64,000 nucleotides of DNA, from assembly GCA_010909165.1 (NCBI GenBank), contig VJWM01000253.1, positions 62,001-126,000 on the forward strand, written 5' to 3'. Origin of the DNA: Anthoceros angustus (taxonomy: Eukaryota; Plantae; Anthocerotophyta). The notes under the pieces were generated by a model. It was not told where the DNA came from, did not search any database, and saw only the letters and a list, made by a program, of their open reading frames with translations. Positions 51,892-54,547 of this stretch are shown here, piece by piece; position 1 is the stretch's first letter, and every line of letters begins with the position of its first letter. The position numbers and the translations under genes were made by a program.

Positions 51892-52476
51892 CTAGCTGCT
51901 GGGCAGCAACCTACCATGGTACATTTTGTCCAGAAGCTCCTTGGCTTCGGGTCTGCGAAGGAGCCCCTTGTTGTTGAACACGCCGGTGCCGAGGCAGACC
52001 GGGCAGACGAGCTTGCCGCGTCCTGCGAAGAGGGAAATCCGTGCGAGATGTCAGTTACGGTTAGGATGCAAGAAGATGCACATTCCAGCGACTCGGATCA
52101 GGGCGGATACCGTAGCAGTTGGGGCATTCGGTGAACTCGTAGATGTCCTTGGCTCGCTTTCTGTTGAGGGCTTTCCACTTGCCAGTCCCTCCGCACATGT
52201 CACCTGGCCAAAGCAAGGGATGATGGGTTCAGATATTGTGGTTTGGAGGACGGGCCTGCCTTCGAGGTTGTATGCAGGGAAGATGAAGGAAGCAGCACTT
52301 ACAGAGCACGGCACCGAAGCCACCACAGTTTCGGCAGCCAGGGGTGTTGTCTAGGAGAGCCTGGGCTTCATGGCCGGAATCAGCAGCCAAGGAGAGAGCT
52401 CCAAGGCACAGAGAGCAGAGAGCTTGTCGACGAGTTTGTGCATTCTGCAGGAGAGCATAGAACCGGTTACCACCAC
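51892..52476 (-). CDS. PSA2: PHOTOSYSTEM I ASSEMBLY 2-like DnaJ zinc-finger protein; exons 52444(or 52476)-52303, 52203-52111, 52022-51892; 5' end unresolved
   Basis: TRRQAL...[86 protein letters not shown]. Four CxxCxGxG repeats and a twin-Arg signal. Not shown in the ORF track because the exons are short. Confidence 0.92.
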
Positions 52477-52510
52477 CTGTAGGGTCCGGTTCACAAGGCC
52501 GGCCGGGGAG

Positions 52511-54547
52511 TCAAGGACGGGAGTGGGGCATTCGTACATGTTCTGCGCTGACGATAACAGCTACTTCTGTTGGTGAAGGCTCCGACTCCGTGTCAGGGGG
52601 TGCTGGACAGTCGGCGGTGTCTGAGGCTGTAGCCAGAGCACTTGGGTCCTCTCCATCGATGACGTCCGCCTCTGATTTTGAAGAAGCGTCCTTGGGTAGC
52701 AAAACTCTGGCCCTGACATGGGTGCCTTTCAGAACCGAGGCCCGGAGGGATTCAGCCAGCTTGTCTACCGGGGCAGTCCCTGCTTTCAGAGTTACCCGAG
52801 CGGCTTGCTTCGGCGTTCCAGTCCTTGCACCGAACATGGTTACACTATCTACAACTCCTCCCAGCTTTTCTACGTGCTGCTCCACATCAAACCATGTTAC
52901 CTTAGGATCCAGATACCAGAGAACAAGCTTCTCTTTGTGAGGGAGTTCTTGAGCCTTGCGAGTAGGAACCCTTTGGGCAACCGGAGGTAGTGTTTCACTC
53001 GGTCCTGTGGGTAGCTTTTTCCCTGTTTCCGCCTCAATTTGCCTCTTCAGGTCCCTGAGTACCTTGATCTGGCTCAGCTTCTCTTGGGACAGCTTGTCCC
53101 AGTAGATACCTGTGTGCCCCCCGAGAGAACATTCCTGTTCTCAGCCCCCGTGCTCCAGTCCCACACAGAAGCCAGAATTCCAGATGGTATGGAGTTACCT
53201 GTAGGCTTTGGAATGGTCGTGTTGGTGCGGATGACTTGGGTAGGAGTGCAGATGATGTCCACCGGGACGTCATGTATAAGAAGTTTTTCCACTGGTATGG
53301 TGTCTACCAGCTGCTTATCATGCACTGACAACGCACATTTCTCTCATCAGGGGCAGAATCAGTGGCAGATCATACAGAACCAGGAAGGCCCATCATTCCA
53401 GCAACCGAAGGAGGGTAAGTAGACTACCTGATGTAACGATAAGTGTGGAGTCATCGATTGCACCCATGTAGCGCAGCAGACCATACTCCAACTCTGCAAA
53501 ACCCTGCAGAGTGCCGGAAGGAGCTGAATGGAGAGTCAAGGTGAAGGCACACAAAACAATCACAAGCCAGAAATGGATGCTGCGTCTTCTACCTCTCCTT
53601 TCCCGAGACGGGCACCAGTTGCAGGATCCACAGCCACAGAGCCAATAACAAGAAGATCCACCTTCAAGTCCGCCTTGACTGTGAGGGGCTTCCCATGCTT
53701 GGCTACCCCTGCTGAGGTGACAGACTCTTTAATCGCTTCAGTAGACAGAACGACAGGATCCAACAACGAAAAGAAGCCTGTCCGAAGCCGAGGCTGCGGA
53801 GTTATCATCTTCTTGCCCTCTGCATCCACACTCACGCCAGGATGCTTCAGGCCATGTGAGGACGCAAATACCATGTTCTTCACCCAAAATGCTTAATGCT
53901 CTCACCAGCCAAAACCAAGCGTCGCAGTAATTTCTGAGGAGTATCCGGATTCACTTTCACAGTCTTGGCAGCCACAAATTCTGGCAAACTTGCCACCTAA
54001 AACAGTTCCACAATGTTGAGGATGCACAGAAAATTCAGCAACGCACCCTCCAGAGAATGGAATGAACTCCACTAGAACCCAAACGCACATACAATGAAAA
54101 GAGCAGCACCTTCGTGGCTGCCACATTCGCACCAACGAAATTCGGAATCCGGTGGTGCACAGGTCGCGGGTTCTGGGCCAAGTTCTCGGCTTCCAGCAAG
54201 TCCCAAATCTTCTTCCGGATGGCCCACTTCCAAGCTCCAGGCTTCTCCTCTGCCCCGTCGGAACCAGCACCCTCTTCCTGCTCCACTTGACTCAGCTCGG
54301 CCGCCATTTGGTCCCGGGCCTCCGCGTCCAGCTGGAGCCGCTCCGCCTCGAACGCCTCCACGTCGAACGCCTGCTCCACCGCCGGAGTCGCCCCGTCCGA
54401 GGCCGTAGCGGAGCACAATCTGAGCCTGTGCGCCTGGTGCGCGCAGCGCTGTTGCAGCGGCCTGGCACAGTTAGTGGCGGGGAGCGACGACAGGGGGTGC
54501 CCCGACGGCACGATCACGGACGGCTTCAGCCCCAGTGCCTGAGCCAT
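52511..54547 (-). CDS. COG0212: 5-formyltetrahydrofolate cyclo-ligase-like protein (COG0212/MTHFSD) with transit peptide and C-terminal RRM-like extension, 518 aa; exons 54547-54110, 53996-53906, 53819-53593, 53503-53428, 53324-53199, 53109-52511
   Basis: [14 protein letters not shown]...[91 protein letters not shown]. All junctions are GT-AG and phase-consistent (1557 nt). Confidence 0.92.

Follow-up and report, generated by a model that had tools for sequence, protein, structure and literature searches.

A PSA2 gene without a start of its own lies in frame behind COG0212 in the hornwort Anthoceros angustus: a candidate spliced fusion

How can a plant express PSA2, a protein required for photosystem I accumulation in flowering plants, from a gene that has no start codon of its own? 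The question is raised by a locus of the hornwort Anthoceros angustus, found within a 64,000-nucleotide (nt) stretch of genomic DNA (contig VJWM01000253.1, positions 62,001 to 126,000; hereafter the window, in whose coordinates positions are given unless stated otherwise). Here a COG0212 gene and PSA2 stand in tandem on the minus strand, with 66 nt from the COG0212 stop to the splice acceptor of PSA2 at 52444. Because photosystem I accumulation needs PSA2, some unusual mode of expression must exist in a lineage whose PSA2 gene has neither its own start nor its own transit peptide. An earlier note, made from these letters alone, had held that the last COG0212 exon and the first PSA2 exon occupy the same reading frame with a single TGA (52513-52511) between them, and that PSA2 has no clean start. 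Both points were borne out: on translation of 52297-53107 (minus strand) the frame of the last COG0212 exon runs past the TGA and on through the twin-arginine signal of PSA2 to its first zinc-finger motif, and no in-frame ATG occurs between the TGA and the arginine pair (RR). The arrangement is real at the DNA level and is conserved in a second, deeply diverged genome described below.

The spliced gene models were searched exon by exon, and the features are collected in Table 1. The third COG0212 exon alone matched the 5-formyltetrahydrofolate cyclo-ligase (5-FCL) family PF01812 (E 4.5e-09, 36.9 bits, cut-off 27), exon 1 gave a weak match to profile positions 1-40, and two other pieces searched in frame against Pfam gave no family match. 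Homologues of the window protein include some named '5-formyltetrahydrofolate cyclo-ligase-like protein COG0212', and its six exons align in the same order with those of seed-plant loci, moss-like loci and the second locus. With PSA2 exon 3 as query, 140 PSA2/EDA3 relatives were recovered from a library of 50%-identity representatives, 46 of them at E<=1e-10, including a Riccia protein (P0006) named Protein EMBRYO SAC DEVELOPMENT ARREST 3, chloroplastic. The window PSA2 carries the four CxxCxGxG-type motifs of this family (one of them CPVCLGTG) and its C-terminal motif LLRRP..LLDKMY.G, and there is no second PSA2 copy within the window. Its first exon reads TRRQ, a 14-residue hydrophobic core and AQA, followed by the first CxxCxGxG motif, and on the strength of the RR, the uncharged core and the AxA it is predicted to encode a twin-arginine (Tat) lumen-targeting signal. 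What the gene lacks, compared with the rest of the family, is an N-terminal start of its own and a transit peptide before the lumen signal.

Table 1. Features of the COG0212-PSA2 locus in window coordinates. L001 is the second locus and L006 a moss-like COG0212 locus, each in its own coordinates; a slash marks an exon boundary.
Feature	Position	Strand	Remarks
COG0212 exon 1	54110..54547	-	ATG 54547; transit-peptide-like N-terminus, acidic stretch, start of 5-FCL fold; donor aag/GTGCTG, phase 0; 63% identity with L001 8472-8939, both beginning MAQAL
COG0212 exon 2	53906..53996	-	79% identity with L001 9126-9212
COG0212 exon 3	53593..53819	-	5-FCL domain core; donor phase 0; 84% identity with L001
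COG0212 exon 4	53428..53503	-	92% identity with L001
COG0212 exon 5	53199..53324	-	donor cag/GTAACT, phase 1 in COG0212 frame; 88% identity with L001
COG0212 exon 6, to candidate donor cat/GTACGA	52538..53109	-	end of 5-FCL, RRM-like domain, disordered acidic tail
RRM/ACT-like domain	52700..52933	-	exon 6 product residues 59-136; L001 10232-10465; L006 5001-5483
In-frame ATG (VTMF)	52835..52837	-	strand beta-2 of RRM-like domain; candidate start of a separate PSA2 precursor
Acidic Ser/Thr/Ala/Pro-rich tail	52538..52693	-	about 51 residues; disordered (pLDDT below 50)
TGA, sole stop separating COG0212 frame from PSA2 frame	52511..52513	-	
Candidate phase-0 intron	52445..52537	-	93 nt, containing the COG0212 TGA; L001 counterpart 10697-10948 (252 nt)
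PSA2 first recognisable exon	52303..52444	-	no ATG; 60% identity with L001 10949-11080
PSA2 exon 2	52111..52203	-	97% identity with L001; dN 0.02, pS 0.55
PSA2 exon 3	51892..52022	-	stop TAG 51894-51892; 90% identity with L001

Only two usable AG acceptors lie ahead of PSA2, that at 52444, which is in phase 0 behind a good pyrimidine tract (ggttctatgctctcctgcag), and that at 52476, which is in phase 1 behind a weak tract and just 34 nt from the stop. The measured distances of 34 and 66 nt agree with the 35-65 nt estimated earlier, and the 66 nt that separate the stop from the PSA2 exon cannot accommodate both a 3' end and a promoter. The Anthoceros genomes have a high gene density (Li et al., PMC8075897), so tight tandems are to be expected, but this does not explain a downstream gene without a start. 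In the COG0212 frame the two phase-0 donors that had been pointed out are present, gaa/GTAGCT (last exon base 52565) and cat/GTACGA (52538), and by exon arithmetic their junction with 52444 would give fused open reading frames (ORFs) of 622 residues, the polyprotein length previously proposed, and of 631 residues (1893 nt), respectively. The 93-nt intron that follows from the second donor falls within the range of the local introns (86-113 nt) and, given introns of this size, intron-defined splicing should pair the acceptor at 52444 with a nearby donor. As judged from its letters, the best such donor is cat/GTACGA at 52538, in frame. Scored with a rough matrix derived from 14 real local donors, which themselves span 5.2-9.6, cat/GTACGAAT reaches 6.2; the matrix is only indicative and rates unused GTs inside exon 6 highly as well. 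GTACGA serves as a real donor in the PSA2 gene of the second locus. Outside the COG0212 frame, neither the window nor the second locus has an ATG-started exon of more than 22 codons in phase with the PSA2 acceptor.

The second locus is an 18.8-kb genomic Logan contig (SRR33208241; L001), the one close relative to emerge when the last COG0212 exon was used for a word search, and it is probably from another hornwort since its COG0212 exon 3 is 84% identical to that of the window, compared with 63-66% for moss-like and seed-plant homologues. It carries the same COG0212-PSA2 tandem on one strand, with all six COG0212 exons and a TAA stop at 10700-10702, and its PSA2 exon starts 246 nt past that stop, with the boundary gttgcag/ACC TCA CAG ACA AGG CGC at 10949. 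This acceptor is in phase 0 and four codons ahead of the RR, exactly as at 52444, the twin-arginine signal has the same layout, ending A-H-A, and PSA2 is likewise without a start of its own. At 10700-10722 the contig reads TAAATG, with five codons running onto a good donor (cct/GTATGT) in phase 0 with the PSA2 acceptor; use of this ATG would yield a PSA2 with a signal peptide and without a transit peptide. In the COG0212 frame a phase-0 GT stands directly ahead of the stop (gat/GTATAA), parallel to cat/GTACGA in the window, and among the frames upstream of the acceptor only that of COG0212 is open, the two alternative tail frames being full of stops.

The two loci are far apart. Synonymous sites are near saturation (proportion of differing synonymous sites, pS, 0.55-0.72), no alignment above chance was obtained for the ordinary introns or for the junction, and DNA conservation of the junction intron (score 9, against 8.1 +/- 1.2 for shuffles) is within chance. 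With the substitution counts of PSA2 exons 2 and 3 pooled, the ratio of non-synonymous to synonymous change (dN/dS) between the two loci is about 0.025, a sign of strong purifying selection, which means that PSA2 is translated in both lineages. As it is present in two deeply diverged species, the arrangement is old and has been maintained, and since an independent assembly has the same structure it is not an accident or indel of the window assembly; an assembly indel concealing a normal PSA2 start, which the earlier note had put forward as a way in which its reading could fail, is thereby excluded. All three expression routes suggested in that note (a fusion, a shared transit peptide and overlapping genes) are arithmetically possible, and the comparison of the two loci favours an in-frame splice out of the last-exon frame of COG0212.

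PSA2 genes elsewhere suggest what is missing. In Sphagnum fallax (L024) a phase-0 intron lies seven codons before the RR, preceded by exons for a transit peptide and an acidic spacer, whilst in Riccia sorocarpa (L023) a single exon runs from the ATG through the signal. An intron just ahead of the twin-arginine signal is thus found in Sphagnum and the hornwort-type loci and not in Riccia, and two introns in the zinc-finger region are common to all of them. The canonical proteins (Arabidopsis AT2G34860, Riccia P0006 and Sphagnum P0267) resemble the hornwort-type PSA2 in the four CxxCxGxG-type motifs, the C-terminal motif and the succession of RR, core and AxA, as well as in two intron positions in Riccia and three in Sphagnum, but they are encoded by stand-alone genes, each of which begins with an ATG of its own followed by a transit peptide and an acidic spacer. 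That first exon is missing from the hornwort-type loci, and the last exon of COG0212 takes its place. Given how the Sphagnum gene is built, the missing hornwort exon should end in a phase-0 acidic spacer, and the COG0212 tail, which is acidic, disordered and in phase 0, has just this character. A single in-frame deletion joining the PSA2 spacer exon to the last COG0212 exon would give the present structure. As to synteny, one of the checks that had been proposed, the tandem is kept in the second locus, whereas no COG0212 occurs within 6 kb upstream of PSA2 in either the liverwort Riccia or the moss Sphagnum.

Our favoured reading, to which we give a probability of roughly 0.4, is that COG0212 and PSA2 form one transcription unit in which a 93-nt in-frame intron removes the TGA, yielding a fusion of about 631 residues with an internal twin-arginine signal. 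The pre-mRNA would begin at the COG0212 promoter, and splicing would join cat/GTACGA (after 52538) to ctgcag/AAT (52444), so that the TGA falls inside the intron; were the intron retained, only COG0212 would be made, ending eight codons past the donor. The precursor would comprise, in order, a transit peptide, the 5-FCL-like domain, the RRM-like domain, a disordered acidic linker, the twin-arginine signal and the PSA2 zinc-finger domain. The use of this splice, the position of the transcription start and all of the sorting steps described next are inferred. The N-terminal COG0212 transit peptide would import the precursor into the stroma. Tat signals insert as loops and their N-terminus does not cross the membrane; the internal signal could accordingly loop in so that only the C-terminal PSA2 domain crosses the thylakoid membrane, and cleavage after AQA by the thylakoidal processing peptidase would then free PSA2 into the lumen and leave COG0212-RRM on the stromal side.

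Several observations weigh against such a fusion. In the second locus the corresponding donor, gat/GTATAAAT, scores 3.7, below real donors, and is outscored by GTs at 10717 and 10811; moreover, a phase-0 GT near the end of an ORF is weak evidence by itself because the Val codon (GTN) is common there. The likeness of the COG0212 tail to PSA2 spacers is one of composition, order-specific similarity being non-significant (shuffle p 0.66 and 0.22), and the match between the tail ends of window and second locus (SPT.VA..S.E) has a p of 0.18. No COG0212-PSA2 fusion protein was found among the 140 PSA2 relatives, in libraries that seemingly lack hornwort proteomes. To our knowledge, no natural plant precursor has been described with an internal twin-arginine signal behind some 500 folded residues. 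When the PSA2 signal exon was used for a word search nothing matched, an exact look-up of the exon 6 ORF found no record, and PSA2, EDA3 and COG0212 had no entry in the hornwort paper supplements searched, the literature searched giving nothing on the locus. A stronger claim, that the only PSA2 of hornworts is the C-terminal portion of a COG0212-RRM-PSA2 polyprotein split across two compartments by the thylakoidal processing peptidase, seems to us rather unlikely, and we know of no case described in land plants in which proteins for two compartments are produced by splitting a precursor in this way.

The main rival to the fusion keeps the same splice (52538 to 52444) and instead places the start of the PSA2 mRNA inside COG0212 exon 6, with translation from Met 52837 giving a precursor of about 221 residues. 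The first 49 or so residues, which are basic and correspond to the C-terminal two-thirds of the RRM-like domain, would then act as the transit peptide and the acidic tail as the spacer. This would call for no unusual protein sorting, and both the layout (basic N-terminus, acidic spacer, RR, core, AxA) and the length fit ordinary PSA2 precursors, which have 194-242 residues. The methionine is also present in the second locus (10328), with Leu in moss-like homologues, and the segment from it to the tail has few acidic residues and a net charge of +8 in the window and +7 in the second locus. A single Met conserved in two species, however, has no statistical weight, and this one lies within strand beta-2 of a folded domain whose conservation serves a different purpose. 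A promoter within a coding exon would also be required, with the transcription start confined to a stretch of about 50 nt unless two small upstream ORFs (ATG 52895 and approximately 52887) were tolerated, and COG0212 would still need a transcript end within or downstream of PSA2. On balance we consider an internal start unlikely.

Alternatively, PSA2 could be an independent gene overlapping the 3' end of COG0212, with a short first coding exon in another frame, starting either at ATG 52719 or 52656 (with a donor at 52642 or 52587) or at ATG 52539 (MYECPTP..., with a donor at 52519 or 52495). ORF and donor combinations in phase do exist, and the ORF from 52719 is transit-peptide-like in composition. 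The form given in the earlier note, from ATG 52656 through a GTCGGA donor at 52587 to acceptor 52476, has all its parts in place and its donor is indeed weak, at -4.9 far below real donors, as are those at 52642 (1.6) and 52519 (-3.9). The frame shared by 52719 and 52656 is nevertheless shut by many stops in the second locus, where the acceptor corresponds to 52444 and not to 52476, and the donor at 52495 would need a 50-nt intron. Because of those stops the 52-residue ORF at 52564..52719 (minus strand) within exon 6 was rejected as a conserved feature despite its transit-peptide-like composition. The second locus offers short options of its own near the stop (ATG 10703 with cct/GTATGT, ATG 10695 with tat/GTGGTG and ATG 10720 with tta/GTAACT), and has an ATG at the position equivalent to 52539 (ATGTAYRAATGC), a match that carries no weight as the DNA similarity of the junction is within chance. 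The ATG-started options near the stop supply only 5-22 residues before the signal and would therefore leave a lumen protein without a stromal targeting part. Overlapping genes thus strike us as distinctly unlikely.

A mixed group of other routes, comprising bicistronic reinitiation, leaky scanning, a non-AUG start, readthrough, a distant or trans-spliced exon, an assembly error and a decaying PSA2, is improbable even when taken together. Green algae are known to have nuclear genes that are bicistronic (PMC7896298, PMC11892635), and the COG0212 stop of the second locus directly abuts an ATG (TAAATG). The algal loci resemble the present one in having two conserved ORFs a few tens of bases apart, on one transcript in their case and predicted to be so in ours. 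There, however, the downstream ORF has its own AUG, reached by leaky scanning past a short upstream ORF, whereas the PSA2 ORF of the window is without an AUG, the first ORF exceeds 500 codons and an in-frame splice is possible. No in-frame ATG follows the TGA in the window, and the length of the upstream ORF, with its many AUGs, rules out leaky scanning. Since the acceptor and its pyrimidine tract are conserved in the second locus, the sequence preceding the acceptor is intronic. As for a distant exon, an ORF upstream of COG0212 beginning MAAQQ (55127) was considered and set aside, since it is not conserved in the second locus. The same structure in an independent assembly of another species stands against an assembly error, and a decaying copy is excluded by the dN/dS of about 0.025, the window holding no further copy.

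The weakest alternative, also raised in the earlier note, is that PSA2 borrows the first exon of COG0212 by a splice from its donor (54110) straight to 52444; this is phase-compatible in both species, exon 1 providing a transit peptide and then an acidic stretch, and has a precedent in grasses, where rps14 lies within an intron of nuclear sdh2 and its expression and targeting depend on alternative splicing (PMC1543663), but it would skip five exons and 1.67 kb where introns are about 90-250 nt, would bring along some 40 residues of the conserved 5-FCL fold and would leave unexplained why the COG0212 tail is long only where PSA2 follows, so that we hold it to be very improbable. The grass SDH2 (sdhB)/RPS14 locus is nonetheless an instructive comparison. 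In both cases two unrelated organelle proteins come from one locus on one strand, and the downstream protein has no start or targeting sequence of its own and relies, by prediction in the hornwort, on splicing to upstream exons. In the grasses only a presequence exon is borrowed and the destination is mitochondrial, whereas here the likeliest join follows a complete upstream protein and the PSA2 part has its own predicted twin-arginine signal.

If the fusion is true, the locus offers a natural test of a twin-arginine signal deep inside a large folded precursor, and it would show how one deletion may unite two plastid genes with both functions kept. If translation instead starts internally, the locus would be a rare instance of codons with a double use, encoding a portion of a folded domain in the one protein and the transit peptide of the other. 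In both cases, gene models produced automatically for hornwort genomes will probably be wrong here, showing a truncated PSA2 or a COG0212 with a long 3' untranslated region.

The domain that precedes the acidic tail sets the bryophyte-type COG0212 apart. Seed-plant COG0212 proteins (for example Helianthus P0002, 346 residues) have the PF01812 core and the conserved exon structure in common with the window protein but end shortly past LPTGPSE.LPP, whereas the bryophyte type adds an RRM-like domain and the hornwort type a long acidic tail as well. A model obtained with AlphaFold2 from a four-sequence alignment has a beta-alpha-beta-beta-alpha-beta fold (predicted local distance difference test, pLDDT, 80-89), and the best matches found by Foldseek in the PDB are RRM domains (TM by target 0.7-0.8), together with the ACT domain of PurU. 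The Pfam RRM_1 family (PF00076) was not reached (E 0.25, 11.7 bits, cut-off 20.7), and the modelled RRM identity holds at the level of the fold only. The window, the second locus and moss-like metagenome contigs have the domain, seed-plant COG0212 does not, and no description of such an RRM/ACT-like extension was found in the literature searched. The tail that follows has 51-77 residues in the two hornwort-type loci (77 in the second) and about 22 in moss-like COG0212; the moss-like loci (L002-L007) have the RRM-like domain and no PSA2 downstream. One of these, a metatranscriptome contig (L002, 760-2579), has introns 1, 3, 4 and 5 spliced out and about 680 nt of intron 2 kept.

A few further observations concern the surroundings of these features. 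Exon 5 of COG0212 contains an alternative-frame ORF of 25 codons (53199-53273, minus strand; 9858-9932 in the second locus), whose ATG (53273) arises from His-Asp codons. It is open and free of acidic residues in both species. Its end coincides with the real donor of that exon, in phase 0, and would thus fit the PSA2 acceptor. As a start for PSA2 it is unlikely, since an internal start site and exon skipping would be needed, and it is probably a by-product of the 88% amino-acid conservation of the exon. Among the PSA2 relatives, an angiosperm protein of 690 residues (P0038) combines a casein-kinase-like N-terminal part with a PSA2 that is missing some of the zinc-finger region, and probably reflects neighbouring genes merged during annotation. 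Lastly, in the window a 45-bp unit repeated 2.5 times (97% match) occupies 54984-55096, between the divergently oriented COG0212 (start 54547, minus strand) and a DUF4326 gene (55126-55494, plus strand).

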